A DNA stretch of 64,000 bases from Perkinsela sp. CCAP 1560/9 (lineage: Eukaryota; Protista; Euglenozoa: Kinetoplastea): NCBI GenBank assembly GCA_965644495.1, contig CBFFSA010000010.1, forward strand, positions 496,001 to 560,000, given 5' to 3'. Under the pieces are notes generated by a model. It was not told the origin of the DNA. It made no database searches and saw only the letters and a program-made list of their open reading frames with translations. Shown piece after piece: positions 2,719-62,556 of the stretch; positions within the stretch are counted from its first letter, which is position 1, and each line of letters starts with the position of its first letter. The translations under genes were made by a program, and so were the position numbers.

Positions 2719-2980
2719 TGCACCCGCCCATCATCATACACCAACCAATTTGTTTTTGAGAAATTCAAAGTACTTTTCTACGATTGATTAGTGAATACAA
2801 TTCCTGTACGCATTCATTTCATAAATGGAGTCTGTGCAGTCAGCGCGTGACGTTTCGTGACGCTTCGTGACGTTTCGTGACAGCCAAGATCGAGGTTTAC
2901 TTGGTGCCTGGCTTGGTGCTTGTCAGTGCCGAGCGCCTCAATCATTCAAGATCCATTTCCCTGATTTGCGGTGATACAAC

Positions 2981-3080
2981 AACCCAGGATAAAGTGGACG
3001 AGGGAGATACCAATAGTGTAGGTGCGGCAGTTTCCCACAAGAAAAACGCCATCTCCACTTTTTTAGTCACCTGTCATGCC
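2981..3080. repeat. One arm plus loop of the GGGAGATAC hairpin module
   Basis: Reverse-complement match to 60718-60819. Confidence 0.8.
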
Positions 3081-3489
3081 TCGGAACCTATAAATCTGTC
3101 TCTGAAGGGTCTGGCTTGCCATCGGCGATGCGCAGCAGTCCCGAATGACTTGGATTCTCAGGATTTTGGTCTGGCTTGCCAGTGGCCGTCGTCCATGGTG
3201 ATGTACGTAATCCATGGTGATATCGGCTTCTGTACCATAATGCGCTACATTACAATACAATACATCGTATTAATCGAGCGCGCCTTGTGGGTCATCAAAT
3301 AAGGCACTCAGAAATCTACCGCTCTCTAGTAAGATGGGGCTCCCGGGAAAAAGCGAGATTTCCATCGCCTTCCGATGCATGCGTACTTCGATATCCAATC
3401 CCGCCTCTCGAATTGTTTGTTCATACTATTGCATAATAGCAGAGAGTTTTCAGGGTAAGGCCCTCATACAACGGGATAACCCTTTTTAT

Positions 3490-6400
3490 TTAGCAAGCAG
3501 AGCGGTTTTCCTCGTCCGTCCATTCAGCTTCGTTCCTCCGAGCCCAAATAATATAGCTGGCCCGACCAGCCATTAAACTCATGCTTTCTCTGCATGATCT
3601 GGCTCGTTTTCGTTCCCCATGGAACACGGCGTCAAGATAGCGACAGGATCCGCTAGGAAGTCCCCGTGCGCCGATCTCGAACGCTAGGGCATAGCAGTTC
3701 GGGTTCTCGATTCTGCGCTCGTGGAGAAGTGAGTTATACTTCTCTGACTTCCGCCGGTGTGCGTTTTCACAGTTCTCCTCCCACGGGACAGTTAGCTCAA
3801 TGATGAACTCGGTCCCGTTCCGTAGTTTGATCCAGCCATACGGGCGCAGTAAACTGTCGCTACTGGTGTACCACGGGAGTGGGTTCCGTTCACCCGTGAG
3901 GTCAAAGTAGCAAGCTTCGGTGGCAGGGGATTGGCGTACGTGTCGTGCGAACTCGCGGAGAACCATGTCGTGTCTGAGTGTGTACCTCCCTTGTTGTAAG
4001 GATGTGTTGCATGATGAAAGGACGTGTCTTGTTGTTTGTATCAGAGTGATAGTTGCGACCCCATTGTACAAGGGATACTCGGGAGGGCAGGGGGGTTAGA
4101 GTCATGACGGAGGACATGAATCGCGAGAGTTTCTCGTTTCGGATCCCATGGATGGCAGATGCAAATTCTTGTGCCATTTCTGGGTCTGACGGAAACTGCC
4201 ACCAGAGGGCAGCAACAGGAGCACGTTGTCGTAGACGTGTAATCATTTGTTCTTCGTGGGCATCACGGAGTATTTGTCGTGCGCGCTGTGGGTCGTTAAG
4301 ATGATCGGTTATTTGTGCAGCTAGGCGGATTTGACCTTTCGCACGCTTCCTTTGCTCTTCCTGGATGCGGAAGCGCAATGCCTTGAGCACGTTCGGGTCT
4401 CGTGATTGATGCATTTGGGTAAGTGACGTTCCGGTGCACTCGTACCAGAGTTGTGTCAGACTTTTGAGATTCCAGCCGCGGCAGGAGTATAGTACTTCTG
4501 TGCTACCGGCACGAGCCATGTTAATCCATCGTCGAATGTGTGCTGTGACTCGCTTCTGAAGCCGCAGAACTGAGCTGAAAGAGATGCAGGGGTGGATGGT
4601 AAACTGAAACCGAAGTCGGGAAATTATAGCGTGTCTGTAGATCCACAGCTTAGCCGAGAGATTATAGGCGCTGGCACTCGTGTTTTCGAGCCATCCCTTC
4701 AGCTTTGAGTTTAATTTCTTGAAAAGTTCGTTTAGCTGCTGAGATCCAGGGGCGAGGGTCATACCAAGAAATGAGCTTCCGGCGTCACAAATATGTGGAA
4801 TTTTTTCTCCGTATGTGGTTACTGTAGGTCTTCTCGTCATGTACCCCGGGTGCTCTTCGCCTTTCCGCGTGCTCATACATTGGACTCGACTTTTTGTGAC
4901 GTTGATTTTTAATCCGATTTTGGAGAACACCGTGGTTAGTGCGTTCAGCGAAGTTTGCATGTCACGGTTACTTTCGGTCAGAATGGTTAAATCATCGGCA
5001 TACGCTTTCAAGAAGTTGTTATCGCCGTTGGGAAGGCGCATGCCAAAGGTTGGACACGAGAACCGAACGTATCGTAATACGATTTCCATGACTACTAAGA
5101 ATATAGTGGTGGAGAGTGTATCGCCTTGTAAGACTCCCTTCTTTACATGTATGGGACGCGTTAGACCTTCGTAACATTTAACTCGTATATGTGCATCAGT
5201 GAGGCTGTCTTTGATGTAGTCGACAACGTTGCAGGGTATGCCTGCCCAACCTAGGGAAGCTAGTATAATGTTATGCGGGATCGAACCAAAGGCGTTAGTG
5301 AGGTCCAATTGGGCAAGACAGTACTGTCGTTTATGTCGCTGGTAGTGCTGGAGGAGGGTGCATAGAGTTTGGGTGTGCTCCAATGTCCCATTGATTTCGG
5401 GAAGAAACCCTTTCTGTATTTTCGGGTCAATCACATTGTGTCGAATAAGATGTTGGGTCAGGCGATGCGATATGATTGTGTGGAACGCTTTACCAAGGGC
5501 GCTCGTCAGTGAAATGGGGCGCCAATTTTTGGGGTTTTCCGGTGCTCCGTTCTTACATTGTATCACCGTTCTTGTATGTATCAGCCTAGTGATTGCAGTT
5601 TTCCATGATGGAGGGCAGGTCGAGAAAGTCATCAGATTATTGAATACCTTAGCAAATTGATCATGCATGAATGGACATTTCTTAAGAATCAGATTGGTGA
5701 TCGTGTCTGCACCGGGTGAGCTGGAGTTCCGTTTCATATTGATGGCTGCTGTGACATCGTCTCGCGTGATTGGGTCCCAATGCATGGGTTGGGCGGCTCC
5801 TGGTCCGAGTACATCTGGAGGAGGCAGTTGGAAGAGTTCTTCACTGGGTTTAAAGCTTGACTCGAAGTATGTCTCTATGGTGTTCCGGTCGCAGGTCGGG
5901 TAAGTTGTATTCTGTACTTCATTAGCGTCAGGTTTGTCGATCGTTTCTGAAGCTGCTGTCCACGGATTTCTGGAAAATCGCTCGGAGGCCCAGCGCTGAT
6001 CGATTTCTTCTCTTTGTTTCGTCGCTTCTTCCTCACGTATCCTGACTAGCTTCCGACATTCTTTGATTTGTGCTCGTAATTCGTCTCGTTCCGTCCTACT
6101 TCTCGTATAGCGTAGCGAAGTTTTCAAGGTTGTGAGATGGTGTTTCAGTTCTTGTGCGACTCTCTCCGTGGCGAGTGGTCGATACCATCGTCGGGCGTGT
6201 CCGGTGCTAGCTCTGATGAGGAAGCCCCTTGTCGGATTCGCTTCCGTCGCTATTTCGTAAGCAGATACGGCTAGGGCGGCGCTAAGAAGTTCTGCGTTAC
6301 GTATAGCTGTCTTCCTGTCCGTTGTATCGCTTAGAAGTTCGTTGCAACGTGCACTTGCTCTCGCTTCAACCTGTCGCCATTGCTCTTCGCTGAGTCGTAT

Positions 6401-8527
6401 GGTAACCTTCCCGCCAAGTATTGCATTGTGCTTTTGCAGGAGTTCTACTGCTTTTTGACTTTGAGAGGCGTCAGATTGCACTGTCGGCGTGGAGGGTTCA
6501 ACTTGGGAATGTATGTTACTGGGTACTGTTGTTGGGGATTCACAGCCGGTTTCGTTCCCTGGTGCATAGAGTGGCCCAAATACTTTGCAACATAGGTGTG
6601 CGCACTCAAGTTTGTTTCGACACGTGTGGCGGCATGGCTGTACAGTGCGCAGTGTCGGTGCACTACGGTTCTGTTGAATGCGATTCGGTGATGCTTCTCT
6701 GCGTGAGATACGTTCGTAACTGACTTCTTCCGCTTCCTCCAGTCTTCGATGTACTGTAATGCGTAGATGTCTGAGATGTGGTATATCCATTCCGTTAAGC
6801 GCCTTCATGACTGCGCGGCCTAGTGCTCCCGCTGTTGCATACTTCTCGTTGAGTTTAAGTGTATTATCTTGGAGAAGGGATGTCCAGCTGGCATGCCGAC
6901 TGATGTGTTGACTATTTTGTTCTTCGATATGTATGTAGTCGCATCCGCGGTGGTCCATGAGTTCTTCAGTTGTGGAAGGCTCGACAACCAAGTCATGAGA
7001 GTTGCTTTTACCAGACAACATTTTCGAGAGTGCCGCTTGTGCTGCTTGGAGAGAGGGTATTCTAGCCCGGACGAGAGGAGATTCGCTGGCATTTCGAATA
7101 TCTGGAAAGTATGTCCAGATCAGGTTTGCTACTGTTCGCACTTTCACGGGGCGGGCTCTGCTCTGGACAAAGTGAAGGTATTGCTTTTGCCGTGGTTCAT
7201 GGTTTGTGTCAGGTGGTGCGGATTCGTCCCGGTTCTGTGTCGCGCTGCTTTGAAATACCCAGCCAGGGACTTCATCGTTTTCTCCTTCCTGTTCCCTGGG
7301 ACAAGGCATGATTAATTCTTGCTTTTCCGTCAGCTTTTCCACCTCGTACATCTCATTGTGGTTAAGCGTGACTGTTGGGTTTGCTGGTAAATAGGGATTG
7401 CTTTCTTTCTCGACCGCAGTCGTGAATGGCTGGGATGATGTGCATAGTTTCGTGGGACTTGCGGTTGCGGGTTCTGGTTTTCCGTCATTTTGTGGCATAG
7501 TGTCTACTTGTATATAGAAAAACCTGATATACCAGAGAATTATTCGTTGTGCAAGTTTCATGATTTCAAGAGCGGTCATGCTCAGTGGTTGCTTTTTCAA
7601 CCGCGCGACGTTTGAACAAAATTTCTCGTGCATTATTCGTATCCGGGGCAGTAAAAGCAGAGGCGATGGGAAAATGTCATACGTTTTTCTGCAAGAAGAA
7701 GTAATGAACCTGATGGTACTACCTATGCACACATATACCATGTTCATACATTGGACAATGTGTAATGGGTTTGCTGCTTCAGAAAGCCAACCAGTTAATA
7801 GGGACAATAGGGTTTGAGTGTTCCTTGTGATGACTAGTAGTACGTGACCAAAGGGTCCATTGTTTGTTGGCACCACATTTATGACTTTCTTCTGGGAGTG
7901 TCGTATATGACGTTTGCAACAAGGGTGTTTGCAGGTGACTTTGTTCAGACAGATGTGCCTACACGGTTTTGTCGTGATACTTTGTGTGCCAACATTTCGA
8001 CGGAAAGGATTGAGGGCGTTGGGTGACGGGATTGCGCGGATGGGTGCTACTAGGAGGTGAACGGCGAGGCTAGATATCCATCTGAAGACGTTAGATATGA
8101 TGATGCCAATATTCCGCATGTTGTAGAGAGTTCTGAATACTAGTATAATTGATCGGGCCATGGCAAGCGGGGAGACTTCAAAATTCCTTCGTTTCTTTGA
8201 CATGACGGTATGTGATGTTACGGTGTCGCTATCCGTTATACTTTGCGCAGTTAAGTGACGCTTGCAGCACAAGTGTAAGCATTCACGTTTATTCAGACAC
8301 TTGTGCTTACAGGGTTCCGCTGGGGACGATGCGGTGGTATTCGCCGAATTGCCAGTCACATGCTCGGTTTGCGTGACGTTTAGCAGATTGTCGGGAGTAC
8401 TTCCGTTCTCGTTGGAAGAGGCGTCAGGATGGGTGGGAGTTGCGCTTTGCTTGCGAACGCCGCGTGGTCCTCGTGTAAGGTCCTGCAGCGCATTCGAGTG
8501 AGATCGTTGCGCGCGGTGTCGCGCCAT
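3490..8527 (-). pseudogene. Non-LTR retrotransposon polyprotein (RT + zinc knuckle + restriction-like endonuclease), HERO/NeSL-like, frameshifted
   Basis: WRPISL, QKGF..GTLEH, LDLTNAFGSIPH, GVLQGDTLS and YADD in the 3902-8527 ORF; HVLSSC..GRYTLRHD, ELTVPWEE, KY and EIGARG in the 3490-4071 ORF. A frameshift near 4040 removes the CxxC, and the catalytic RPD reads RPY. Confidence 0.92.
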
Positions 8528-8564
8528 GTAGATTTAAACGATAAAGAAATAAATCAACAAGGTA

Positions 8565-8599
8565 CAACAAGGTACAGAAACTGTATCTTTGCAGCAAGT
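8565..8599 (-). ncRNA. Spliced-leader-like exon fused to the retroelement 5' UTR
   Basis: The minus strand reads ACTTGCTGCAAAGATACAGTTTCTGTACCTTGTTG, containing the euglenozoan SL core ACAGTTTCTGTAC...TTG. Its last 10 nt are duplicated (8555-8564) and the ATG follows 27 nt later. Confidence 0.7.
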
Positions 8600-9467
8600 C
8601 GGAAGGGAAAGATTCCATAACCTGACTTTGCCCACATGAAAGGCACACTTCGGTACCTTGCAAAACGCCATCTTCAAGGCAGAGAACGCATTTGTCCTGC
8701 TCGTCAGGCGTCGGACACTATTTTACAATATACACGAAAGGCTAGAGGATTAAGGTGTACGATTGTGAAGGGAGTCAAGCTCTTGCAATTTCCGTGGCAC
8801 TGCTGCCGATGAACAGACGATTGCAGTCACATTGAAATGAGTACATGTAATCAAGTTTCCTTCCAAAACAATGTTAAGAAAGCTCGAAAAAGTAAGATAA
8901 TGTGGCTGCGCGTGACGTTCGTGACGGCCAAGACTTGCACAGACTCCAATGTTTAGCTATCAATAATCTGAAAACAATGTTCTTTTTAAACCATTTGATC
9001 AGAATTTTTTTCATTTATATTGTCACTCGTATCAATATTACCAGTACACTGTCGACACTACCCGCTGTACACTGTTGATACTTTCTATTGACAACTTTTG
9101 CATTTTACATATTGATAACTCAGAAGTGAGTATTCCTATTTCATCCGTCGTGTTTTCAAGTCATTATCCAAGGATTTCCACACCTTGCAACCTCCAGGAC
9201 TAAGAACATGCTACAAGTCCCATGGCATTAAAGTTTAATGAACAGAATGAGATTTAATAAACAGATGGAGAATTTTTAAAAGTCAGCTAGTTGTGCTCGT
9301 TCTCTAAAAAGAACGCACGATCAAAAACCCTTTTTCATAAGCTACAGTGCTAAGTCACAGTTCAGTGAAAACGCTGACCACTTGGAAAAGTCAGAGGTGC
9401 AGCAACACGAATTACAAAAGATTCTACATGCAACATTGCCAAGCCTGGTATCCGCCTTTGTGGACTA

Positions 9468-9932
9468 CAGTGCTCTTAAAAATTAGTATATTTTTGATCA
9501 GTGTTGGTCGAGAAAATAACGTTAATTAAAAATACACGAATTTTTACGACACTAATTTATATTACAAACAACTACTTGAATCCAAGAAAAAAAACGCATG
9601 GAAAACTAATAAATTGGTCCTTATAGTTTTTAAAAAAGCCATTCCCGTTGTTCAGTAGATATTTTTTCGCTGAGGATTTTCCGTCGTTTGAGCCACGGCC
9701 TCTATTCCCAGTGTCGCTCTTATGTCTTCGGGCATATTCGATTATTAAAACAGTGACACTAATTAAAAATGTACTAATTTTTACAACTCGATATTTTACG
9801 ACACCAATTTTCTATTCCCAGTGTCGCTCTTATGTCTTCGGGCATATTCGATTATTAAAACAATGACACTAATTAAAAATGTACTAATTTTTACAACTCG
9901 ATATTTTACGACACCAATTTTTACGAGCACTG
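9468..9932. mobile_element. Tc1/mariner-type MITE with an internal 110-bp tandem duplication
   Basis: TA|CAGTGCTCTTAAAAATT ... AATTTTTACGAGCACTG|TA; 9701-9810 is repeated at 9811-9920. Confidence 0.75.
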
Positions 9933-13071: not shown

Positions 13072-13138
13072 TTACTTAGAAACAGTTTCTTTCTCTTAAA
13101 GAAGCGAAGCGGTCTTTTCATTCTTTCATCTTCACGCA

Positions 13139-13972
13139 ATGTCATCTCTAATCACAAAAACTGCGGATTCCTCCCGGACTCGAACACGTCTGGGTAAAGT
13201 ACGAGGAGCCATCCTCTCACAAGACATGCAAATGGCACAATTCATTGAAAATCTCGAGGAAACTGCAGTACTTACTAAGAATAAAACAGAAGCATGCTAT
13301 TGGACCGGTGTCGCTTGTAACTCCGTCCATGAGGTCGTATCCATCGAGTGGTCGTCCAAACAATTGAAGGGTAATCTCACCTGGGGTAGCCTACCTCACA
13401 CGGTGTACAGTGTTCGTATCGGAGATAATAAGCTGGATGGATATTTTCAGGTTCGTGCACTTCCCCCTAAACTCATTTACTTCAACATCCAAAATAACGC
13501 CATTCATGGAGCCTTTGATGCCGGATCCCTCCCCCATGCGTTTGAAGAACTCTGGTCGGCATCTACTAAGTTTTCCGGTGAGCTTGACTTGACGGCACTT
13601 CCCCCTTCTTTGAAAGTGTTTTCTTTGCCTCGGAACTGTTTTTCGGGAAGCATAAATTTAACTTTGTTGCCTGGAGCACTACTGAAGCTCTATCTTCAAG
13701 GAAATCAATTCGTAGGGAGCGTGGACTTAACAAGTCTTCCGAAGCAACTGGAAATTTTATACCTGTCACAGAATAAGCTCGATGGTGAGTTGGAGCTTCG
13801 AAATCTTCCGCGCGCATTACATACGCTCTCTCTTGGGGACAATGCCTTTACGGGGAAAGTATGGTTTGATGCATTGCCCTCAGGTATGTATGAGTTAGAT
13901 CTGAGTGGAAATAGATATAATTTGGATGTACAATCCTCGTCAATTCCAACAAATGTCAAAATAAGAAGTTGA
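13139..13972 (+). CDS. Leucine-rich repeat protein (LPQEY family)
   Basis: KVRGAILSQD, Cys cap, about 8 LRRs, intact ORF. Confidence 0.88.
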   Translation: MSSLITKTADSSRTRTRLGKVRGAILSQDMQMAQFIENLEETAVLTKNKTEACYWTGVACNSVHEVVSIEWSSKQLKGNLTWGSLPHTVYSVRIGDNKLDGYFQVRALPPKLIYFNIQNNAIHGAFDAGSLPHAFEELWSASTKFSGELDLTALPPSLKVFSLPRNCFSGSINLTLLPGALLKLYLQGNQFVGSVDLTSLPKQLEILYLSQNKLDGELELRNLPRALHTLSLGDNAFTGKVWFDALPSGMYELDLSGNRYNLDVQSSSIPTNVKIRS

Positions 13973-19008: not shown

Positions 19009-19129
19009 AATCATTACCAGCTTGTCACTTCGACACGGTGTAATGACCTATGACATTATTGGCGTGAAGAAATTAGGAAAGACAAAACGTTTTAGTAAAA
19101 CGTAATTACTCAAAATTAGCCCTGTTTTT

Positions 19130-19996
19130 ATGATGTTGCTGTTCTCAAGTTCACAAGATACTTCCGGCACAACAGAACTTCGTACGACCACGATGTATCG
19201 AACGGCTCCGTCAAAGGTAGGAAGATTGGCATTACCTCAAGAGTACGACCTCGCCCGGTTTATTGCCAATGTTACGTTTGCTAAGAAATCCTCTGAATAT
19301 TCTCCTTTGAAGAATTGGAATACAACTACTCCAGCATGTGAATGGTATGGCGTGATATGTAGGGCGGAAAAGGAAGTGTGCACCCTGAATTGGCACGATC
19401 AAAAGTTGAGCGGATCTTTTCGTTGGGACTACTTGCCCCGCACCGTTAGCACGATGAATGCATATCGGAATGATCTGAATGGTCAGATTCCGCTTCAAAT
19501 ATTACCTTCACAATTGGATGTGATGCAGATAATGGTCAACCATTTTGATGGATTGTTAGACTTGTCACACCTTCCGGAAAATATACGTTACGTGAATTTG
19601 GGCACAAATCTTTTTTATGGTGAGATCGATCTCACAGCACTCCCCAAAAGCTTGTGTGAACTGCACCTATGCTCGAACAGATTGACTGGTGGCTTAAACT
19701 TCTATACACTGCCTCCTAGGCTACGGATGTTGTATCTGAGCGACAACAAGTTTACAAGGGCCCCTGATTTAGCGCACTTGCCTCTCAGTTTAGAATTCCT
19801 TCTATTAGACGGCAACCAACTTTATGGCGAGCTAGACTTGGATCACCTCCCTCAGAAGATGGACTCCTTGTACTTGAACGGCAACGAAGAACTCTGCGGT
19901 GTTTTTGACGAGTCGTTTTTACCAAAGCGTTTGACACGACCTTACGCGTTTCGTTATGCAAACACGAAAATTTCTCAGAAGAAGGCTTCCGAGTGA
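19130..19996 (+). CDS. Leucine-rich repeat protein (LPQEY family)
   Basis: KVGRLALPQEY, Cys cap, about 7 LRRs. Confidence 0.88.
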   Translation: MMLLFSSSQDTSGTTELRTTTMYRTAPSKVGRLALPQEYDLARFIANVTFAKKSSEYSPLKNWNTTTPACEWYGVICRAEKEVCTLNWHDQKLSGSFRWDYLPRTVSTMNAYRNDLNGQIPLQILPSQLDVMQIMVNHFDGLLDLSHLPENIRYVNLGTNLFYGEIDLTALPKSLCELHLCSNRLTGGLNFYTLPPRLRMLYLSDNKFTRAPDLAHLPLSLEFLLLDGNQLYGELDLDHLPQKMDSLYLNGNEELCGVFDESFLPKRLTRPYAFRYANTKISQKKASE

Positions 19997-23105: not shown

Positions 23106-24529
23106 TTTTGTATTTTTCCAAGATCAAAGAGAGCGCTGGCATTCAGTATTTTCTTCGACAAGAGATCTTTTCCTCGCTGAATAATGGCTTCCTTTACATG
23201 TGCTTCATTGATTTTATGAATACTGATACTGTTTGAAGCGGGTCCCGGAGAATAGAAAAGGCGATTGATGTTGAAGAAAACAATAGACATACACGTCAGT
23301 CCGCTTTCGTGGCTTCAGGGATAATACGCGTGGTTAGTTGTAGTTATTGGGATTCCCGGGGACTTTTAGTTATTGGGATTCCCGGTGACTTTTTCCTCCC
23401 GCGTTAAGAGGAGTGAAACCATTCAGGTTCGGGGTCGGTTCGCCTCTGTTCGCCTGACGCAATCTATTCCCCTTCTACTACCTATTCTTTATATTTATTT
23501 ATTTGGGCTTAATTAAGTTTGAGTGTAAGTAAGTTTGAGCGTAACAAACGTTATGTTCGATAAACTGTTTTCTAAATCTTTTGAAAAAGAATCTTCCATT
23601 TTTTATAGATAACTTTACGATTCCGAAGGTAGTGCTTGATGAGTTTTCGTCAGAACAAAACACCATCTGAAAGTTAAGAAGAGATTGATGTCCAGGCGCT
23701 ACTTAATTTACTATTGGAATGAGAGGATTTTTCAGAAATCCTATAGATTTTTTCTAAAATTCTTTTTACCCACGTACCGTAGAAATTTCAATTAATGGTA
23801 ATTAAGGCAACATTAATTAAGGAAATAATTAATTTTTTGTCATTTTGGGGGAAAAATCGGAAAAAATTAATTTCATGATTCCGTCTCAGACTCCTTTCAA
23901 TGATCGTTTTAGCTTTTCTCTCACACGTTGAACTGGTTGAAGGTAAAGGTGGGCAAAACAGGCGAAGCTCGTTTCGCCGGTACCGTTTCACCGGTATTTT
24001 CCTCGATCCCCCTGCAGGGTGATGGCATCGGGGGGGATCGCCCGCAGCCTGACCAACCCATTTGGGCTTAATTAAGTTTGGGCGTAATTAAGTTGGGCGT
24101 AATTATGTACGGGCGTAATTATGTTCGGCACGGTACAACCAAGAGATTGTAACGGGGTGATACTATACTTGCTTGTTTATGTGGCTTATGGACTTACGAG
24201 TGGGTAGCCCGCGTCCACCCATTCGCTCGTTCTTCAGGCTCGCTCTTCAGTCGTACATGTTTTTGCGCTACTTTTACCCGGAATGCCTCGCGGCGCCGTG
24301 TTTACTCATAATACGACACGAATATAATCTAAACTGTAAACTACATGGTCAAGAGGGCGGGTGAGAACGGTGGGCGTGGACGTTAGACGAACAGGGCAGT
24401 ATGAATTTATGTAGATATAGCAATAAAGAGGTATACAACTATTCTTATTAGGTAAATAGAGATTATCATTTGACATACATCATTGGTAATGATGAATACT
24501 TCGCGCTCCTCGTATAAAAGCATTTAAAT

Positions 24530-25625
24530 GCGTTTTCATCATCACCAGCGGTGCAACTAAGGATGCAGTCGCGACCAGTAAAAGGTTGAGAGATGAGGGG
24601 GTTGCAGATGTTTCGCCCCAAACCATTCGGGTTTCCCTTCGGAAGCGTGGTTTGAAGGGGAAGAAGAAATTACGGAAACCCCACCTTACGAAGCGTCACA
24701 AAGCTCTACGTCTTGCCTTTGCAAAGAAGTATGAGCATTGGAAGAACGCCGACTGGAGCCGTGTGCTTTTCACTGATGAAAGTAAGATCTGCCGTTTCGA
24801 GTCGAATGGCAGCCGGTGGGCGTGGGTGAGCTTTGGGGAAGCACTTTCAGAGCGAAATACACACAGCACCGTGAAGTACGGTGGGGGATCCATCATGATA
24901 TGGGGGTGTATGATGGCTCACGGCGTGGGCTCCATTGCTCTGGTTCATGGCAACATGAATGCTGAACAGTACGTTCAAATACTTCAACAGAATTTGTCTC
25001 CTTCCCTCCACAAGTTGGAAGTCATGAAGGACCGGATCATCTTCCAACAAGATAATGATCCAAAGCACACGAGTAAGAAGGCCCGGGAATTCCTTCGTTT
25101 ACAAGAATTGTGTGCCCTAGACTGGCCCCCGCAATCTCCCGATTTAAATCCCATAGAGCACCTATGGGGCGAGCTCAAAAAGTCGACTGCGGATCATCCA
25201 GATCCTCCCGTAGGAACTTTGGGAACGCGCCCAAAAAGCGTGGGCAGGCCTTCCTCCGAGTGCATGTCTTCCTCTTGTCCGCAGCATGCCCCGTCGTTTA
25301 AGGGCAGTAATTAGGGCGAAGGGGGGACTTACGAAGTATTAAGTTTTGGTCATTTTGGTTTGGTAAGGGTGAAGTAAGGCAAAGTTTTGGTCAAAAAAAA
25401 ATAATCTCAAAAAAGTGAAAAAAGTGTTCAAGTGTTGGGATCGCATTATATCTTTCATAGTTTTTTATTGTAAGATCGTTGATGAAGTCTAAGTACGTGG
25501 GAATGTAAGCACTACTCCAGCCTACACTACTGTAATATACTACTGCATTATCCTCTGCATCTCTTTTGTAAAATATAAAAACATTAAAATTTGTGAAAAC
25601 ATTTGAACACTTTTGTTAGTTACTG
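24530..25625 (+). mobile_element. 5'-truncated Tc1 element with a frameshifted DD34E transposase
   Basis: FTDESK, IMIWGCM, QQDNDPKH and WPPQSPDLNPIE; the right end reads ...TTACTG|TA. Confidence 0.85.
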
Positions 25626-30778: not shown

Positions 30779-32317
30779 CAGGGGGGGTCACGAAAAGAGT
30801 GGGGGGTCTAAAATTTGTACCGTGCGAGCTTTTGACCTATTTCCTTCGGCATTCAACAGATCTCGAAATTTTAAGACTACGTGAGTTATAACTACTTAGG
30901 CATATAAGGTTGAGTGATAAATGGTGAGTCAGCAAAAAACAGGTTTTTTTGTTTTTTGCATATTTGGATTTTCTCACTATTTCATTATTGATCCCCCGTT
31001 TTTTTCTCGAAGAAGTGTGATTCGGGACGGGAAGTATTAGTATACGATGCTTTCATATCAGATAATAGATAATCAAGCGCTTTTGGAATTGCAGCTTGTA
31101 GTTCCTTACGGTTTGTGGGGCGGAGAGTAAATTTTATCTGGTGATCCATCATGCTCCACAAATTTTCAATTAAATTTAAATCCGGCGACTTGGCAGGCCA
31201 ATCAGGAATGCTGATACCCATGTCTCTGCCGACGCGGCGAGCGTGATTATGGCCCGGAGCGTTATCCATGATTACTGTTGCCGCTGGTTTACGCTTTAAC
31301 CAGTTGTAGAAACCATTTCGTTTTGTTATGGCAGAGAGAAACGTTTCATTCGTGACCGTCTCATTCTCCGCAAACTCATGAAAACAGTGAACCTTGGGAA
31401 CCCCCCATTCAAGGCTCACCGCCATCCAAATATGAACCCCCTTTCCTCCGAAATATTTCTCAACATCTTTTGGTACCTCAAGGGGTTCATCTGACCTTTT
31501 GCAAATGTACCAAATATTGCGTGAGTGGTACCCGCATTTAAAAATCTTTTCATCCGTCCACAGAATACGGGCGTACTGAAAAGGGGTGAACCTCTCCAAA
31601 CGATTTGCCCACTCCAGGCGGTCGAATTTCTGCTGAGGCGTGAGATGAGGAACTTTCCTCATTTTTCTGCTTATGTACCCGCTCCATTTCAGTGATCTTT
31701 TCACAGACGAAAGAGAGCATGGGTACTTGGTTTGATCGATCTGGCGGTGAACCCACCTCCAAGATGAACAGCCAATGGGACTACGTTGATTCTCTTCATC
31801 TACAATAGATTCTAACATTATTCGAAACTCTTCATTATCAATCGCATTCTTACGTATGTATTTTATACGTTCTAACCCTCCTGTCTACCGGTGGCGTTTA
31901 ACCCATCGAGAGACAGTTGCTTCACTGCATTTCATAAGAGCAGCAGTGTCTGTAATCGAACGTCCCTGGTTTTGTACCTCATGGACGCAAATTACACGTG
32001 TTTCATAAGTGATTTGTTGCGTCGAGAGGGTGCGCCTCTGGCGGCGAAGTGTTTTCGGCATAAAAGATGTGTTAGAAAGAGTTAAGTGGTATTTTATTCA
32101 TAGATTAATGGGCTAAAATGATAAAAAATGATAAAAATCCGATTTTTTACCTGAAAATTCAGTAAAATTTTATCATGACGTCATATCAGCTTCAGGGGCG
32201 GCAACAATGGTGCCAGTAGCCTTAAAATTTCGAGATCTGTTGAATGCCGAAGGAATTAGGTCAAAAGCTCGCACGGTACAAATTTTAGACCCCCCACCTT
32301 TTTCGTGACCCCCCCTG
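30779..32317 (-). mobile_element. Tc1/IS630-like element with ~100-bp TIRs and a damaged transposase (30985-31818)
   Basis: TA|CAGGGGGGGTCACGAAAA...TTTTCGTGACCCCCCCTG|TA; WTDE, MDNAPGH and SPDLNLIE (32 residues between the second D and the E). Confidence 0.9.
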
Positions 32318-36453: not shown

Positions 36454-36790
36454 TATTATATTATTGTGTTCCTCTTTATATTTGAACTGTTTTTGTTGGC
36501 TTTTTGGCAATCGGGGTAGCCATCAAAAAGGGGAACGCCCGGATTCCCGGAATGCCGCGGTACAAAAATGGTAACGTAGGGGCGTGCGCTAATGGGTTCG
36601 GGGGATGACAAAAAAAATTGTTCACTTTTTTTTCAATAATCGAGGGTAGAGCAGTAGTTATACAACCACCGCAATTAAGATGTTATGAACGATGCCCTGA
36701 GCGTGAAAAATTAAGGTTCAATCTGACACAATAGAGAGTTTTTCATCTTATCCCTCTTTCCCTCTCCCTCTCCCACCCACCCTCCTCTAC

Positions 36791-37585
36791 ATGAACCCCA
36801 CCCCCACCCTCCCCCACAAACTCCACACCACCACCCTCCCCCAGGAATACCTCCTGGCCCGTCTCATCGCCCCCCTCCACGCCTCATCCCCACACGCCCT
36901 CCCCCCCACGTGGCACACCCACACCCCCGCCTGTGCCTGGGCCGGGGTCCGGTGTGACACGCACCAACACAGCGTCACCCAGCTGCTGTGGCAGCGCAGT
37001 AGCAGTGAACTCCAAGACTACGGCCCCCTGGGGCCCGGGGGCCTGGATTTCACCTCTCTCCCCCCCTCCTTGGTGAAACTCAACGCCTGGGACCACCAAC
37101 TCAGTGGGGGGATTCCCTTAGAGGTGTTCCCCCGGGGGCTGGAGGTTCTCCGGCTGCAGCACAACGCGTTGGGCGGGGGGGTGGAGCTGTTGCATCTCCC
37201 CCCCGCCGCGCGTGTGGTGAATTTAGGGGGGAATCGGTTGCAGGGGGGCGTGGGGCTCACGGGGCTTCCCGCCCCGGGGTTAACCCACCTGTCGTTGGAA
37301 CAGAACCAATTGGAGGGGGAGGTGGTGTTGGGGGGACTTCCCCAGGGGATGGAGTATTTGATCCTGGGGAGTAACCGGTTGGAGGGGGGAGTGGATTTAA
37401 GGAACCTCCCGACGTCGTTGTTGGCGTTGTGTTTGGAGGATCGTCTGCCACCTCAGTTGGAACATTTGTATTTGGATGGGAATGTGGAGCTGTGGGGGAT
37501 TGTGAAGGAGGAGCTTCTGCCGCCATCGCTTACTACGGGGCTTCATGTGGATGATACAAAAATAACGGATGGGACAGAAGAATAG
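36791..37585 (+). CDS. Leucine-rich repeat protein (LPQEY family), compositionally extreme
   Basis: LPQEY, PACAWAGVRC and about 6 LRRs; C-rich 5' part and G-rich 3' part. Confidence 0.8.
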   Translation: MNPTPTLPHKLHTTTLPQEYLLARLIAPLHASSPHALPPTWHTHTPACAWAGVRCDTHQHSVTQLLWQRSSSELQDYGPLGPGGLDFTSLPPSLVKLNAWDHQLSGGIPLEVFPRGLEVLRLQHNALGGGVELLHLPPAARVVNLGGNRLQGGVGLTGLPAPGLTHLSLEQNQLEGEVVLGGLPQGMEYLILGSNRLEGGVDLRNLPTSLLALCLEDRLPPQLEHLYLDGNVELWGIVKEELLPPSLTTGLHVDDTKITDGTEE

Positions 37586-41549: not shown

Positions 41550-42340
41550 TTGGTCTTTGTAAGTGTATTACCAGCACAGGGTGCAGACGTATCGGTCAAA
41601 GTGAAGCACTATTGCTCCTTTTTTGAAAAAAATAAACGAAGATATTTTTTTAGGTTTATGGACCGCTACTACTTATTTTTTTGATTTCGCTTCTAAAAAG
41701 CTGAGTCTGAACATTAATTAAAGATCCCAACGAGCGAGTCGCTCGCCAGCAATCAATGCTCGCTACGGTTCGCCTTCCAGCAGACAACTTAATTAATTGT
41801 GCTGTTGTGCGCAGTTCGTAGTGATCAACCGTGAAAAAAGGTTGTGTTTTTGATAATCTGACACACTCCAAAAGAAAACATATTTGTTTTAGACCAATAT
41901 TTGAAAAATGCAAAAAAAAAAAAAATTGGCGCAATAATACTTCACTTTCACCGACGTATCGAATGAAACCAAAGCGTATACAAGTATAACAGGTCCCAAA
42001 CTCTCAAAAAAATAATTCTTCTCCCCGGGGCCAACACCAATTTTCACCCAAGAATATCAGGTTTCCGTGCGTTTTGACCTAGGATTTTGAATTCTTTACC
42101 AGTAGGGGTTGTTTAGGTATCTCATCGAAAAAACGTCATATAATGGTATCTGGGCTTCCAAGCTCTCAGAATACGGTTTGGCAATCTACAGTCAGCAAAA
42201 GCTCTGCAATTTGTTTCTTTACGTAACGTGGTGTGGGCCTCATATAGAGTGCAAAATGTAACAGTATAAGATAAACAATGTAATAGTGTAAGATAAACTC
42301 TATAACCTAAAATTCTTCTTACCTAAAATTCTTATTTTCT

Positions 42341-43351
42341 ATGAGGCCCACACCACGTTACGTAAAGAAACAAATTGCAGAGCTCTACGACAGCGGTGTG
42401 TCTATGAGGTCCATCTCTGATACTGTAAATTTAAGTATCTCAACAATTTCTATGATATTAAAAAAAGAAAGGCCTGATACTCTCAGGATGCAGGGTGGAC
42501 ACCCTCGAAAGCTTTCCGAGCCGTGCACACGCCGTGTGCGACGACTTGTGTTCTCCGGAAATTCTGCGCGAGAGGTATCATCTCAGCTGCGCCGCGAGGG
42601 CGTTGCTGATGTTGTTCCTCAGTCTATCCGAGTTTCGATGCACCGCTTCGGACACAAAGGTAGAAAGCGTGTCCGCAAGCCCTACCTGTCCAAGCGCCAT
42701 CGCAAGCTTCGGATGGACTTTGCCACGGCCCATGAGCACTGGACAGTGCACGACTGGGCTCCAGTTGTATGGTCGGACGAGACGAAGATCTCGCGCTTTG
42801 AAACGGGGGGACGTCTTTGGACATGGGGGACCCCGGGGGAGGAACTGGGTGAAAAAGGGGTAATTCCCACGGTAAAGTACGGAGGGGGGCACATCATGAT
42901 TTGGGCGTGCATGTCCCGAAGCGGTGTGGGGCATGTGCGTCTAGTTCAAGGGAACCTGAACGCCACACAGTACGTCGAGATTCTTGAAGAGAATCTTGCC
43001 CCCTCCATCGAAACTATGGGTCTAGACCCCCCAATGGTCATCTTCCAACAAGATAATGACCCCAAGCACACAAGCCATTGTGCGCAACGGCACCTCCGGG
43101 GTACCGGGTTTGAAGTCATGCGGTGGCCCCCGCAGTCCCCTGACTTAAATCCAATCGAAAACGTTTGGGGGGAACTCAAGCGGCGCCTTGCAGCGCACGA
43201 TGATCCACCAAGCGGGGTCCGAGAGTTGTGGGAGAGGGTAAAAATGGAATGGGCGAACATACCACCCTCAGTATGTCGTGCCCAGCTGGACAGTATGCCT
43301 GCCCGTACGAAGGCAGTGCTGAAGGCTCGTGGGGGGAATACTAAATACTAA
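42341..43351 (+). CDS. Intact Tc1-family DD34E transposase (element about 42189-43634)
   Basis: HTH N-terminus, WSDE, QQDND and PIE with 34-residue spacing, ending GGNTKY; element ends TA|CAGTCAGCAAAA and TTTTGCTTACTG|TA. Confidence 0.93.
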   Translation: MRPTPRYVKKQIAELYDSGVSMRSISDTVNLSISTISMILKKERPDTLRMQGGHPRKLSEPCTRRVRRLVFSGNSAREVSSQLRREGVADVVPQSIRVSMHRFGHKGRKRVRKPYLSKRHRKLRMDFATAHEHWTVHDWAPVVWSDETKISRFETGGRLWTWGTPGEELGEKGVIPTVKYGGGHIMIWACMSRSGVGHVRLVQGNLNATQYVEILEENLAPSIETMGLDPPMVIFQQDNDPKHTSHCAQRHLRGTGFEVMRWPPQSPDLNPIENVWGELKRRLAAHDDPPSGVRELWERVKMEWANIPPSVCRAQLDSMPARTKAVLKARGGNTKY

Positions 43352-54193: not shown

Positions 54194-55484
54194 TAGTAGT
54201 GGTAGTCATACCCTAACTAGTAATTACTATAGTAATTACTATGAGTTACTACTTTTGAGTCTTCCCATGAATGTTATTGCCATTTTAAAAACACAGTTAT
54301 TTTTGAAATTTTATTTCATTGTTTTATGGCGGATATGTTATTAGCTTTGGCGGTATCTGTAGTGTCTCTCATACTACTGTAGTAGTACTCGTATGCTATA
54401 CGTAGTTACTTGTACACGCTGGTATAATACAGTCATACTAACTTTTTGTTTGACCCAGATACGTACCAAACATATGGGGCCATGACGCCCCTTTGTGGGG
54501 ATGATACACTTGCAATGCTACAAACATAGCATGTCATGATGCCTCTTTGTGAGGATGACATTACACCGTTAGCAATCACCAAGATCGGGAATACAGAAAT
54601 GCCGGGTCATGACACCCCTCTGTGGGGATGACTTCGCGCGACAGCTTTCTGCATTGGTCTTATGCACGCGGTCCTCAGTAACAAAACGGTATTTGCCTTT
54701 TCTACTGTGGTTTACAGTTTTGGTCTAGGTATTCACTCAAGCCCCTGTAAGCTTTGAAACTCTTTTACTGTCCACAGTGTACTTCTTCCCTCTACGCTGT
54801 AAAGTTTCCTTCTTTTTATTTCTAATGCGTTTCCAGATAGTAGAAATGCGTTTTCTATCACTGCTGATTCCCGTCATAGTTGCCAAATTAGAAACAGCAT
54901 TTGTCGCCCTTCGTCCCTCATTATAGATTTCCGCGAAAAACTTAATTAATTAATAGTTAATTATTTAAAAAATGTACGCTTCATCAACGGCACGCTTTAG
55001 AAAGGCGTTTTCTTCATTTCGGTCCTTTACTACTACGTACTTTGCTACCACTTTCAAAAACTCTTTTTTCCACGTGACCGCAGAGTTTTGTTGATGCAGC
55101 ATTGGGAAGAAATGACTTGATTTTCAATTCGCTGACTAATTTTTATTACATATAGAAATTTCGAGGATGTATTCTTTTGATTGGTGGAAAGATTTAGGTC
55201 GTAATTTTGACACCTCCCCTTTGCGACGCGGCTCCAGCTTAGAGAATTTGTTCTGTGGGAATATTCGTTTCGCCAACTGAGGACGCAACTCAGGTCACGC
55301 CCCCTCCTCCATAATTGATGGATTTTGGATTCCTTTTCCGAGTTTGGAAACATAACTAGTATATATTATACACAATCTGTATAAAGATGGGGAATAAGTG
55401 ACTTTGCTTAAAGTCCCTTTCGACTTATTTTTGTACTCCAAAAAAATCTTTTTTTAGGTCTGTTGCCCCATCGATTCATTACCT

Positions 55485-58103
55485 ATGATAACTTCTTCGC
55501 AATACAAAAACGGGAAGCACTACAGTTCGGTGTTTACGAAACTCGTGGATCTTGAAAGAGAGTACTGCATGCGAGAAGAATCCGCGAAACGACTCCGCAA
55601 CCTCACCGTTAAATGTTACACAACGGAGGGAAAGCAGCACGGAACCTTTACGGTCAAAGATGAGTGCCTTCGTGGTCTCAATCTTGTCCCAGGCGACCGA
55701 GTCACATTTAAGCGAGAAACTTTCAAAGAAAATACGAATAAAAAACAACAGGGTGGGTCGATAGTCGCATCAGACGTCGACTGGTTGGAATCTGGATGCA
55801 TCTTTGGCGGAGACGGAAGCCTTGAGGTTACGAAAATTTTGCCACTGGAATTTGAAATGGGAACATCCACAGTTCACTGGATATACAGTCGTAACAACGT
55901 AGATTGCACTGTCAACACTGAGCGGAGGGTCAACAAGGTGGCGTGCGCAAAATTGTGGGATGACACGTGTTATGTGCGTATGAAACAGGCACTAGAGTCC
56001 TTTGCCGCGGGTCCCGATCCAGAGAAACTCTCATACGACCTCCACCTCATTTTCTTGGGCAAATGCAACGATATGGATTTATCATCCAAATTTTCTGACC
56101 TCTGCCGAATCAACGGCTCTTCATCGGAGGAAGATTCAAGTGCGTTGTCTGCGGATAAAGCGACCGAAAAGAGTTCTCAAGTCGAGTGCCCCTCAGATTC
56201 AACGGAAAGTTCAGCTGAACAAGTCCCAAGTGAGTCGTCTGAAGTAGACAATGCGGTATCTCATATCGATGAGGACTCTCCCATTTTGGAAAAGATTTCA
56301 TCGCGACTTGTTTCAAATGAATCACCTGAGCACGACACGATAGACGCCTTATCACGAGATGTGCCGTCTGGGAAAGAAGTAGTTGATCCAGTAACGCATG
56401 CTGAGGCTAGCAAATATCCGAACAAGAGTCCATCGGAACATGCTTTAGCTGAATCACCGGACCATGACGCTGTCGATGCATTATCTCCAACGGTCGATGG
56501 TCTCGAAATTAACCAAAATCAGCCGAGTACCGTACAAAAGGCAAGTCCAGACAACGAACTCAGCAACATTTCTGTGGAAACCAGCATCCCCTTTCTCGTG
56601 GCGCTCAACGAGAGTCAAAAGGAAGCCATTCAACACGCCCTACGAGGCCCACTCACGCTAATTCAGGGACCCCCGGGGACGGGAAAGACAACAACATGTA
56701 CGGCCATTGTGTATCATATGGAAAAATTGATGTGCTCCCGAATCCTAGTGGCCTCCCCAAGTAACGTGGCGGTGGATCACATTGCGGAGCGACTGGCAAA
56801 ATGTGGTCTTCATGTCGTTCGTGTCTACGCACAAAAGAAGGAGTCCTCCCCGCAGTGTCCAAAACACCCTTTTGCTCTACATGTTCTCGTGGATGAACGC
56901 CTTGCCGGGGATCCACGTTACCAAAAATGGAAAAGAAAAAGGAAAGCGCGAAAAGAAAGAAGTACTAAACGGCACAGAAGTACAAATCGCGAAACGCAAG
57001 ACGAACGGAATCACACGTGGCGAAACTTCCTCCTTGACTTCGACGACGACAGCGATAACGAAGGGGAAGAGCAAAAGATTCGTGAACTCATCCGAGAAAC
57101 AGAAAACTCCATTCTAGAAGCCGCGCGGGTGATTTGTACGACCTGTTCCGGAGCCGCCGACACCCGTCTCTCCTTGTTTTCGTTTTCCCATGTGCTGATC
57201 GACGAAGCCACGCAGGCGTGTGAGCCGGAGACGTTAATTCCCTTGGTCAAAGGCACGCAGTGTGCGGTACTCATTGGGGACCACAAACAACTCGGTCCCA
57301 CGGTGCTTTGTCGAGAGGCAGAGCAAAAAGGGCTCGGGGGGACGCTTTTTGAGCGTCTGCTCTCGAACGGGATGACTCCTCATATGCTACGGGTCCAATA
57401 CCGTATGCATCCTGCGATTGCCGCCTTTCCGGCACAACACTTTTATGCAGGAGAGCTGCACAGTAAAGAATGGCCGGAGACGTATTGCGCCAATCGCGAT
57501 CACTTTCCGTGGCCGAATACTCAAGCCCCAGTTGTGTTTGTTCACACTTTCGGACCGGAGGATGAAAAGCAAAGCGACATGTATCCAACCAACAAATCCA
57601 AAGAAGGACGAAAAAAATCAAAACTTCATCATTCTCACAAATCCCCTTCCAATCGTAAAGAGGCGGTTGTCGTACGGGAGTGCGTGATGCGACTCTTGAA
57701 AGGGGGCGTAGGGGGGGAGAAGATTGCCGTCATCACGCCCTACTCCGGACAACGAGGCTGTGTGTTGGGTGAGTTTCAATCCACCATGAGAAGAAGCCCT
57801 TTTATACAAGCAAAGGCGTTGCCGCTTGTCGAGGTGAACACGGTGGATGCGTTCCAGGGTCGGGAAAAGGAATATGTCGTGCTCAGCTGTGTAAGGAGTA
57901 GTCGCTCCGGGGGGATTGGGTTTCTGGCCGATCGTCGACGGATGAATGTGGCACTGACAAGAGCCCAGGAGGGGCTAATCATTATTGGAGATCAAGAAAC
58001 CTTGGGAAGAGACCGTTTGTGGAGTGAACTGTTGTCGTACTGTGATAAGCTATCGGTACTAGTGCAGGGCTCTCTGTCGAAGTTGGAAAAGGTACGAGAG
58101 TAG
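55485..58103 (+). CDS. UPF1-like superfamily 1B RNA helicase lacking the N-terminal CH domain
   Basis: QGPPGTGKT, SNVAVD, IDEATQ, GDHKQL, QYRMHP, TVDAFQGREKE and RRMNVALTRA; stalk-like YSSVFTKLVDLE at the N-terminus. Confidence 0.9.
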   Translation: MITSSQYKNGKHYSSVFTKLVDLEREYCMREESAKRLRNLTVKCYTTEGKQHGTFTVKDECLRGLNLVPGDRVTFKRETFKENTNKKQQGGSIVASDVDWLESGCIFGGDGSLEVTKILPLEFEMGTSTVHWIYSRNNVDCTVNTERRVNKVACAKLWDDTCYVRMKQALESFAAGPDPEKLSYDLHLIFLGKCNDMDLSSKFSDLCRINGSSSEEDSSALSADKATEKSSQVECPSDSTESSAEQVPSESSEVDNAVSHIDEDSPILEKISSRLVSNESPEHDTIDALSRDVPSGKEVVDPVTHAEASKYPNKSPSEHALAESPDHDAVDALSPTVDGLEINQNQPSTVQKASPDNELSNISVETSIPFLVALNESQKEAIQHALRGPLTLIQGPPGTGKTTTCTAIVYHMEKLMCSRILVASPSNVAVDHIAERLAKCGLHVVRVYAQKKESSPQCPKHPFALHVLVDERLAGDPRYQKWKRKRKARKERSTKRHRSTNRETQDERNHTWRNFLLDFDDDSDNEGEEQKIRELIRETENSILEAARVICTTCSGAADTRLSLFSFSHVLIDEATQACEPETLIPLVKGTQCAVLIGDHKQLGPTVLCREAEQKGLGGTLFERLLSNGMTPHMLRVQYRMHPAIAAFPAQHFYAGELHSKEWPETYCANRDHFPWPNTQAPVVFVHTFGPEDEKQSDMYPTNKSKEGRKKSKLHHSHKSPSNRKEAVVVRECVMRLLKGGVGGEKIAVITPYSGQRGCVLGEFQSTMRRSPFIQAKALPLVEVNTVDAFQGREKEYVVLSCVRSSRSGGIGFLADRRRMNVALTRAQEGLIIIGDQETLGRDRLWSELLSYCDKLSVLVQGSLSKLEKVRE

Positions 58104-62316: not shown

Positions 62317-62522
62317 AAAAGGGCCGTGTTTGGACTCATGCTGCGCGCCTCCCGTTGAAAACTACCCGCGTTTAACGAAGCCACTAAAAAAGAAAAATTG
62401 CGAAAAGACCATGAAAAATCTATTTGTTGGGTGAATTTGGGCCGTTTTTGATGCTCTACCAGTAGGGGTAACAGGCGAATCTGTTAGTCGGGGAACGAAA
62501 GGATGAACTAAGGAAAAATTAC

Positions 62523-62556
62523 CAACAAGTCACAGAAACTGTATCTTTTGAGTAGT
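62523..62556 (-). ncRNA. Spliced-leader-like exon followed by GT (possible SL RNA gene or relic)
   Basis: The minus strand reads ACTACTCAAAAGATACAGTTTCTGTGACTTGTTG|GTAATTTTT and shares AAAGATACAGTTTCTGT..CTTGTTG with 8565-8599. Confidence 0.6.

Follow-up and report, generated by a model that had tools for sequence, protein, structure and literature searches.

The 64,000-nt window analyzed here, from Perkinsela sp. CCAP 1560/9, contains on its minus strand an ORF of 1541 aa (3902..8527) with a reverse transcriptase (RT) domain at aa 998-1217 (about 5536-4877), matched by the Pfam family RVT_1 at 4.5e-28. Among solved structures the best match of the RT is R2Bm (8gh6; 5.9e-25), ahead of L1 ORF2p, and three Cys-rich motifs lie within the N-terminal 650 aa of the ORF. 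The Pfam search of the ORF returned no AP endonuclease (Exo_endo_phos) match. Relative to a sister copy (L053), a 29-bp deletion at ~4035 disrupts the frame close to its end, and the coding sequence continues as a frameshifted tail of 193 aa (3490..4071, minus strand) that carries the remnant of a CCHC knuckle and a restriction-like endonuclease (REL) motif. In this tail the CPIC part of the CCHC is deleted and RPD has become RPY, followed by IIELT and K..EKY. The sister copy has CPIC...H....C, RPD, IIELT, and K..EKY, and these C-terminal motifs align with an R2-labelled protein (E 2e-6) and with a nematode RT (E 2e-7). Querying the PDB by sequence with just the C-terminal domain turned up no endonuclease. 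Among the 120 matches listed, the nearest outside proteins are unnamed, nematode, or R2-labelled arthropod proteins with 24-35% identity, and CRE, NeSL, R4, and HERO labels do not occur. Judged by its predicted protein, with an RT, a C-terminal CCHC/REL region, and no AP endonuclease, the element belongs to the R2-type non-LTR retrotransposons, those with a restriction-like endonuclease. The copy in the window, with its frameshifting 29-bp deletion, lost knuckle, and RPY, is defective.

Directly upstream of the ORF, a preliminary description of this DNA had noticed a 35-mer resembling a spliced leader (SL), a 10-nt duplication of its end, a 27-nt UTR, and the RT start codon, without an SL intron. 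The true SL, identified from SL RNA genes near a 5S rRNA gene, is a 38-nt exon followed by a canonical intron, GTATGAGAAGC. Its gene is present in eight copies, among them a 297-bp tandem pair that adjoins the 5S rRNA gene. At this locus Rfam recognized the 5S rRNA only, with no match to an SL RNA family, and ARAGORN found no tRNA, part of the repeat being tRNA-like by eye; a literature search by the SL sequence itself gave no match. The stretch ahead of the RT proved to be the organism's actual SL, although only 26 nt, not 35, match it: positions 8565..8590 (minus strand) are identical to nt 13-38 of the exon of the SL RNA gene. The remaining elements of the description hold as they were given. 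Read on the minus strand, the relic is followed by an exact copy of the SL 3' end, TACCTTGTTG (8555..8564), which comes after TG, not AG, and then by a pyrimidine-rich 5' UTR of 27 nt devoid of AG (8528..8554) and the ATG (8527-8525) that opens the 1541-aa ORF; no GT intron follows the SL sequence at 8590-8565. As a candidate SL RNA gene the site at 8590 was rejected, nt 1-12 and an intron both being absent. Lacking SL nt 1-12, the relic has no capacity to encode the leader's cap-proximal portion.

The limits of the inserted DNA are set by two paralogous empty sites (L015 and L017), which place them at 8587/8586 and 3413/3412 and so define an R2-type LINE copy of 5174 nt (3413..8586, minus strand); the 3' limit is set by the sister copy as well. 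The insertion starts inside the SL. The first four nucleotides of the relic, AAAG (8590-8587), occur in the empty target site as well and constitute a microhomology at the 5' joint, and the same joint is seen in one sequencing contig. The empty sites read ...GCAAAG-TC-TTCGAG..., from which it follows that 2 nt of the target, TC, were lost and that no target site was duplicated. Both empty sites continue straight through the DNA upstream of the joint, which is therefore older than the insertion. At its other end the unit terminates in a 3' UTR (3413..3489, minus strand) that ends in ...TGAACAAACAA and has no poly(A) tail, the 3' end ...ACAAACAA being common to two close copies. The variable 5' truncation within the SL, the fixed 3' end, the absence of LTRs, and the loss of 2 nt of target are the marks of target-primed reverse transcription. 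The DNA that received the LINE is itself a repeat (2826..8948, no strand assigned) with 13-nt inverted ends at 2826-2838 and 8936-8948. LINE-free copies of this host repeat lie on two other contigs, and no long ORF was found spanning its empty site.

The window has a further SL-like site, at 62489..62548 (minus strand), where an SL relic with two mismatches (62548-62523) is joined to the first ~35 nt of a SINE-like family that is dispersed, SL-headed, and devoid of homology to the intron of the true SL. The SL-like copy that had been reported at 62523 heads a SINE-like repeat of dispersed distribution and is not an SL gene. The site at 62548 was likewise rejected as a candidate SL RNA gene, with nt 1-12 absent and the sequence continuing as a SINE-like body that bears no relation to the intron.

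Genome-wide, a 23-mer SL pattern has 561 occurrences, against 0 for the reversed control, far above chance. The next 8 nt after 224 SL copies are AATTATTT, of which the start of the window's UTR, ATTTATTTC, is a variant, and the ORF families behind these copies differ. The form in which the SL is followed by its own last 10 nt occurs at no fewer than 32 genomic places (at least 32), ahead of unrelated UTRs. It is missing from the sister copy, which is 98.5% identical to the element in the window, retains SL nt 16-38, and lies between unrelated flanks. When 15 other full-length relatives were chosen by protein match alone, an SL relic was found in 15/15, positioned 20-60 nt before the ATG and just 5' of the UTR; the SL sequence retained ranges from 16 to 32 nt, and the flanks all differ. 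These data bear out the view that the SL belongs to the element. Families with only 46-53% protein identity have relics identical to the host SL, and the relics of older copies are decayed. The Pfam search of ten other SL-headed ORFs was mostly blank, with one RNase H match and one weak LsmAD match. The hundreds of SL-headed copies in this genome together indicate that its retroelement RNAs would bear the host leader and that reverse transcription extends deep into this leader.

The junction between SL and UTR varies between near-identical copies and inside subfamilies, and it can be ragged, with extra TTG units, SL tails of 8, 10, or 12 nt, and one triple repeat. Some relics are layered and cut exactly after an AG internal to the SL: at nine places the SL is followed by a 16-nt relict (after ACAG) and at two by a 22-nt relict (after AAAG). 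The layered AG-cut relics (9 + 2) point to re-trans-splicing followed by retrocopying in this genome. Layered copies are, however, vastly fewer than single-SL copies, and most copies are therefore not descended from re-spliced SL-headed parents. Moreover, because AG is absent at the SL/UTR junction, an SL-headed copy cannot remake that junction by canonical trans-splicing. Masters in which the common UTR start is preceded by AG were sought among 24 AGAATTATTTYC sites, and none of the 12 inspected is convincingly element-like; AG before the 10-nt tail was found at nine sites, against three for the control, with an element-like 5' end only at L054.

Collectively, these observations favor, with a probability of about 0.85, a model in which the relic is a 5'-truncated SL copied from an SL-bearing RNA of the R2-type LINE, most likely one that had acquired its leader by trans-splicing, and in which the upstream sequence is target DNA. 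The mRNAs of kinetoplastid-type organisms are expected to undergo SL trans-splicing. A transcript of the element matured by this ordinary route would have the SL at its very 5' end, target-primed reverse transcription would proceed into the SL, and the 5' end would then be joined to the target at the 4-nt microhomology AAAG. The inserted DNA would begin with a truncated SL because the RNA that was reverse transcribed had the SL at its 5' end. As the source of that SL, trans-splicing rather than another route is what we infer. Among the sequencing runs searched, the single candidate RNA run yielded no match to this stretch.

The preliminary description had instead proposed that the element owns or has hijacked the promoter of an SL RNA gene, represented by the motif TTGCAAGGT, together with an SL exon, and could thereby produce an SL-led mRNA without trans-splicing. 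The motif is indeed found at similar distances upstream of both SL-like sites of the window (8655-8663 and 62605-62613); it occurs four times in the window against 0.71 expected, and a 9-mer common to two random flanks at near-equal offset should arise, by a rough estimate, about 1 time in 100. However, it lies 50-80 nt upstream of just 2 of the 561 genomic SL copies, both of them in the window, and the DNA upstream of the two true SL RNA genes read lacks it, the best matches there having two mismatches and being placed elsewhere. Apart from it the upstream flanks of the two window sites have nothing in common, and upstream of these sites no similarity to the upstream region of the genuine SL genes was detected. 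At the RT gene the motif resides in a 99-nt insert (8636..8734, minus strand) that the host repeat has in this copy only and that both paralogues lack; the empty sites show that the upstream sequence is pre-existing target DNA, the flank of the sister copy is different, and the relic is without SL nt 1-12. The shared motif therefore stands, its role as an SL promoter does not, and this explanation has hardly any chance of being correct. What accompanies the element is the SL, in 16/16 full-length copies, and not the DNA upstream, which differs among copies, an outcome that the description had itself set against its proposal. TTGCAAGGT and the rest of the upstream sequence are target DNA; they do not constitute a promoter and are not carried along by the element. 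A comparably negligible likelihood attaches to site-specific integration within an SL RNA gene, of the SLACS/CZAR/CRE or NeSL kind, which would make the relic a remnant of the target gene. REL-endonuclease LINEs that target SL genes are known from trypanosomatids and nematodes, and an SL fragment does adjoin the element; but the empty sites harbor no SL gene and no SL sequence other than AAAG, the element has no SL intron on its 3' side, SL nt 1-12 and an SL gene upstream region are both absent on the 5' side, and the other copies lie in unrelated sequence.

Several features count against the trans-splicing explanation, namely the lack of AG at the SL/UTR junction, the 10-nt repeat that does not follow AG, the absence of convincing AG-preceded masters among the sites inspected, and the vast excess of single-SL over layered copies. 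If the relic were instead inherited, full-length SL-headed masters being transcribed from their own first nucleotides by an internal promoter such as Pr77 of L1Tc and fresh trans-splicing being dispensable, a junction without AG, the predominance of single-SL copies, the same next 8 nt (AATTATTT) after 224 SL copies with different ORF families, and the failure to find AG-preceded masters (12/24 AGAATTATTTYC sites inspected) would all fit. We nevertheless consider inheritance improbable, since relics match the host SL across families that are 46-53% identical in protein and decay in a neutral-like manner after insertion, and the differences in junction between near-identical copies and within subfamilies point to junctions made anew. 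Alternatively, the SL could be captured during reverse transcription, with the R2-type RT reaching the 5' end of its template, the element RNA, and jumping onto an acceptor 3' end, that of a free SL exon or of another RNA ending in the SL. The RT of R2 is known for end-to-end template jumping, which does not require AG and could account for the ragged junctions, with their TTG units, their tails of 8, 10, and 12 nt, and the triple repeat. It is, however, a more complicated route than trans-splicing, which is already expected for the mRNAs of this organism, and the AG-cut relics point to splicing at least sometimes, so that we rate capture by the RT as quite unlikely. A broader proposal, tentative and on the unlikely side although deserving of some weight, is that the relic and the AATTATTT-type UTR start, far from being a passive scar, together serve an entire superfamily of R2-type LINEs and their SINE-like partners as a functional 5' end. 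This would come about either through an internal initiator, with the DNA-encoded leader transcribed again and inherited, or through jumping of the RT onto free SL exon. If this is true, then these elements would have found an undescribed solution to the "no promoter" problem of kinetoplastid-type genomes.

With the trans-splicing model as the preferred reading, the locus provides a well-delimited case of an R2-type LINE unit that starts inside the host SL, with both junctions fixed by empty sites, and the attractive but wrong idea of a retrotransposon that owns an SL promoter is removed. It also raises a puzzle: if SL-headed copies have no AG at the junction, how do further single-SL copies arise? 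Several known systems can be compared. SLACS, CZAR, and CRE1-2 of trypanosomatids and NeSL-1 of nematodes are REL-endonuclease LINEs that insert into SL RNA genes. The element described here resembles them in its single RT ORF, its C-terminal CCHC and restriction-like endonuclease, and its physical association with the SL, a likeness at the level of broad class. In those elements, however, the SL is that of the target, whereas here the inserted DNA itself includes it, and the target sequences are unrelated. With R2 the element shares the lack of target duplication, a small target deletion, and the absence of poly(A), and its C..C..H....C, RPD, I-I-D/E-x-T, and K..EKY motifs align; unlike R2, it lies outside rDNA, has three N-terminal Cys-rich motifs with no C2H2/Myb detected, and displays no site specificity visible between two close copies. 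Within the kinetoplastids, the Pr77 internal promoter of the trypanosomatid LINEs L1Tc/ingi reportedly gives unspliced transcripts, in work attributed to Heras and colleagues in 2007. The problem is the same, namely how a LINE is expressed under polycistronic transcription, but the 5' end here is the host SL itself.

The closest parallel comes from dinoflagellates, where retrogenes with DNA-encoded relicts of DinoSL are known (Slamovits and Keeling 2008, reviewed in PMC6050394). As these relicts are outlined there, both systems have a DNA copy of the host SL that abuts the 5' UTR without an SL intron, the mark of an RNA copied back into DNA, and both show stacking cut at an AG internal to the leader, which is seen here at 11 places genome-wide. 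In contrast to the host genes of the dinoflagellate account, the relicts here are carried by autonomous LINEs of the R2 type and by their SINE-like partners, in a genome of the kinetoplastid type, and, again unlike the relicts outlined there, stacking here most often takes the 10-nt form, which is not AG-cut. Our literature search found nothing relevant on SL relicts or retroposition of this kind in kinetoplastids, and the leader-headed retrocopies that it did find had been reported only for dinoflagellate genes, with none described for mobile elements of the kinetoplastid type. The SL relic provides a built-in tag with which retrotransposition events can be dated and counted, a use that DinoSL has in dinoflagellates.

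The core of the spliced leader (SL), GATACAGTTTCTGTnnCTTGTTG, has 561 matches in the 21-Mb genome versus 0 for the reversed control, and at 8 genomic sites it runs into GTATGAGAAGC, with which the introns of kinetoplastid SL RNA genes typically begin. The assembly contains just 8 SL genes, mostly dispersed; two true SL RNA genes form 297-bp tandem units (L024, G000:C1:659819-662841), each with a 38-nt exon beginning AACTTTAACG and a GTATGAGAAGC intron, and a 5S rRNA gene lies ~400 bp from the pair on the opposite strand. The stretch at the head of the minus-strand, RT-bearing LINE (AAAGATACAGTTTCTGTACCTTGTTG, 8590-8565) is this true SL, but covers its positions 13-38 only. The preliminary description thus overstated the length of the SL match but gave the layout correctly: reading along the minus strand, target DNA lies 5′ of 8590, and the SL stretch is followed by an exact duplicate of its last 10 nt (8564-8555), a pyrimidine-rich UTR of 27 nt (8554-8528), and, at 8527, the ATG that opens a called ORF of 1541 aa. 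Many near-full-length SL relics elsewhere start (A/G/C)TCTTTAACG (L030, L032, L033, L035, L040, L042, L051, L052), leader position 2 recurrently differing from the AACTTTAACG start of the two SL genes read, perhaps because SL genes vary or because copying errs close to the modified cap.

Whether the SL travels with every copy of the RT had been set as a check, and it does so among the relatives located. A genome protein search scored 30 relatives out of 486 candidates, many with open frames of 1500-1860 aa. Fifteen other full-length copies were chosen by protein match only, and their predicted 5′ ends were then located from SL position lists, SL-centred loci, or small sequence fetches. All 15 carry an SL relic 20-60 nt ahead of the ATG (1 decayed), 16-32 nt of the SL being kept, and all flanks differ. 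Relics are identical to the host SL even between families with only 46-53% protein identity, and are mutated in old copies and at the 62548 site. This distribution places the relic inside the mobile unit, and because its 5′ limit always falls within the SL, the template RNA of the element would have begun with the SL. Directly after 224 of the ~561 genomic SL copies (e.g., L030, L045, L065) stand the 8 nt AATTATTT (≤1 mismatch), even though the ORFs that follow come from different families. In two subfamilies, some members have and others lack a 12-nt block with AATTATTT at its start.

LINE-free copies of the surrounding repeat on two other contigs (L015, L017) read ...GCTGCAAAG-TC-TTCGAGAGG..., which sets the insertion limits at 8586-3413 (5174 nt). 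The 5′ joint shows AAAG microhomology, TC was lost from the target with no target duplication, and the 3′ end is ...TGAACAAACAA, without poly(A); the same joint is present in one contig from a public sequencing run. The host repeat, with a non-coding body of ~850 bp, flanks the LINE at 2826-3412 and 8587-8948 and is bounded by 13-nt inverted ends of the GGAGTCTGTGCA type (2826-2838 and 8936-8948). The sister copy L053, located on a different contig, shares 98.5% identity from within the SL through the 3′ end; its SL begins 3 nt later, the 10-nt repeat is missing, and its flanks on both sides are unrelated to those in the window. At its 5′ joint (L053:880-925) the flank has TGGGATACAGT and, 5 nt on, the same 11 nt recur at the relic start, as a duplication or microhomology. 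The suggestion that the element owns or has hijacked an SL promoter is refuted by these comparisons: the DNA upstream reads as target in the empty sites and differs in L053, and such a difference between copies had been named beforehand as counting against the idea. The TTGCAAGGT motif does lie upstream of both SL-like stretches in the window, as described, and genome-wide these are the only two sites with it 50-80 nt before an SL core. At 8655-8663, however, it falls inside a 99-nt insert (8636-8734) private to this copy of the host repeat and missing from both paralogues; the two window flanks share no similarity besides TTGCAAGGT, and at the two true SL genes read the best matches have 2 mismatches and are positioned elsewhere. 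A short duplication (cctttcgtgt / cctttcatgt) flanks the insert.

Trans-splicing is expected for mRNAs in organisms of this kind, and the simplest reading is that element RNA would gain the SL in this way and that target-primed reverse transcription would then run on into the leader, leaving SL in element DNA. Layered relics directly support a link between splicing and retrocopying in this genome: a full SL is followed by the 16 nt that follow the SL-internal ACAG at 9 places, and by the 22 nt after AAAG at 2. Two rivals persist, however, because, with TTG at the end of the SL and no AG in the LINE UTR, canonical splicing cannot give an SL-headed copy the same junction again; because single-SL copies are far more numerous than layered ones; because different ORF families share the AATTATTT that follows their SL; and because a search for AG-preceded master copies yielded none that convinces. 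All four points favor inheritance of the relic with transcription from an internal start, yet the SL/UTR junction varies between near-identical copies and inside subfamilies, which speaks against inheritance in pure form. The same problems keep alive capture of the SL through RT template jumping.

The 10-nt repeat is a wider phenomenon: SL plus TACCTTGTTG occurs at no fewer than 32 genomic places ahead of unrelated UTRs, once as a triple, with 8-nt, 12-nt, and extra-TTG variants, and in 0 of the 8 SL genes. In the SL the unit stands between direct repeats (TG...TG), so the reverse transcriptase could have slipped there; a variant SL RNA absent from the assembly is another possibility, and there is only weak support for splicing at an AG that arose beside a truncated relic.

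Other units carry the leader as well. The second SL-like stretch (62548-62523, minus strand, then GTAATTTTTCC) heads a SINE-like family of ~500 nt that is non-coding and whose members conserve a hairpin, CCCGGCAACGGGCAT...ATGCCCGTTGCCGG (L010, L023, L027, L029, L040, L044, L046-L048, and window 62489-62548). The motif CCCGTYGTATGMGGG near the family's end recurs in the LINE 3′ UTR (~3470-3450), suggesting that the two may share a 3′ recognition signal. Elsewhere, units arranged head to tail (L016, L018, L030, L032, L035, and the periodic SL matches at C1:2477645-2492945, with ~5093-bp spacing, and C30:274-11697, with ~2283-bp spacing) look like concatenated cDNA copies: a poly(A) run leads directly into a full-length SL, short UTR, and ORF, one ORF having an RNase H domain.

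The window is transposon-rich, with three Tc1/mariner-type DDE transposase ORFs (24496-25311, plus; 30988-31884, minus; 42311-43348, plus), an SF1 (AAA_11/AAA_12) helicase ORF (55458-58100, plus), and plus-strand LRR/LRRNT_2 gene fragments (13100-13969, 19106-19993, 36707-37582), to which the LINE is antisense. A 110-bp tandem duplication of 99% identity (9701-9921) lies just upstream of the host repeat. On Pfam the RT ORF matches RVT_1 only, its best solved-structure match is the R2 protein of Bombyx, no AP endonuclease domain was found in the element protein, and the L053 C-terminus has a CCHC knuckle plus RPD, IIELT, and K..EKY motifs that can be aligned to a nematode RT and to a protein labelled R2; together these identify it, at group level, as an R2-group (restriction-like endonuclease) LINE. 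The window copy is defective, a 29-bp deletion removing part of the knuckle and shifting the frame, with RPY in place of RPD; L053 carries a separate deletion, of 192 bp, where the endonuclease region ends. A Cys/His-rich motif, C.H.C.NK..C.H.CCK, without a Pfam match, is found three times in the N-terminal ORF part (8311-8255, aa 73-91; 7963-7907, aa 189-207; 6634-6584, aa 632-648); in the corresponding region R2 has zinc-finger and Myb domains. SLACS, CZAR, CRE, and NeSL have SL genes as their targets, whereas the empty sites of the window element contain no SL gene; with no SL intron downstream of the element, and other copies in unrelated DNA, SL-gene insertion is ruled out. The layered relics of this genome match the relict SL pattern described for dinoflagellates (PMC6050394).
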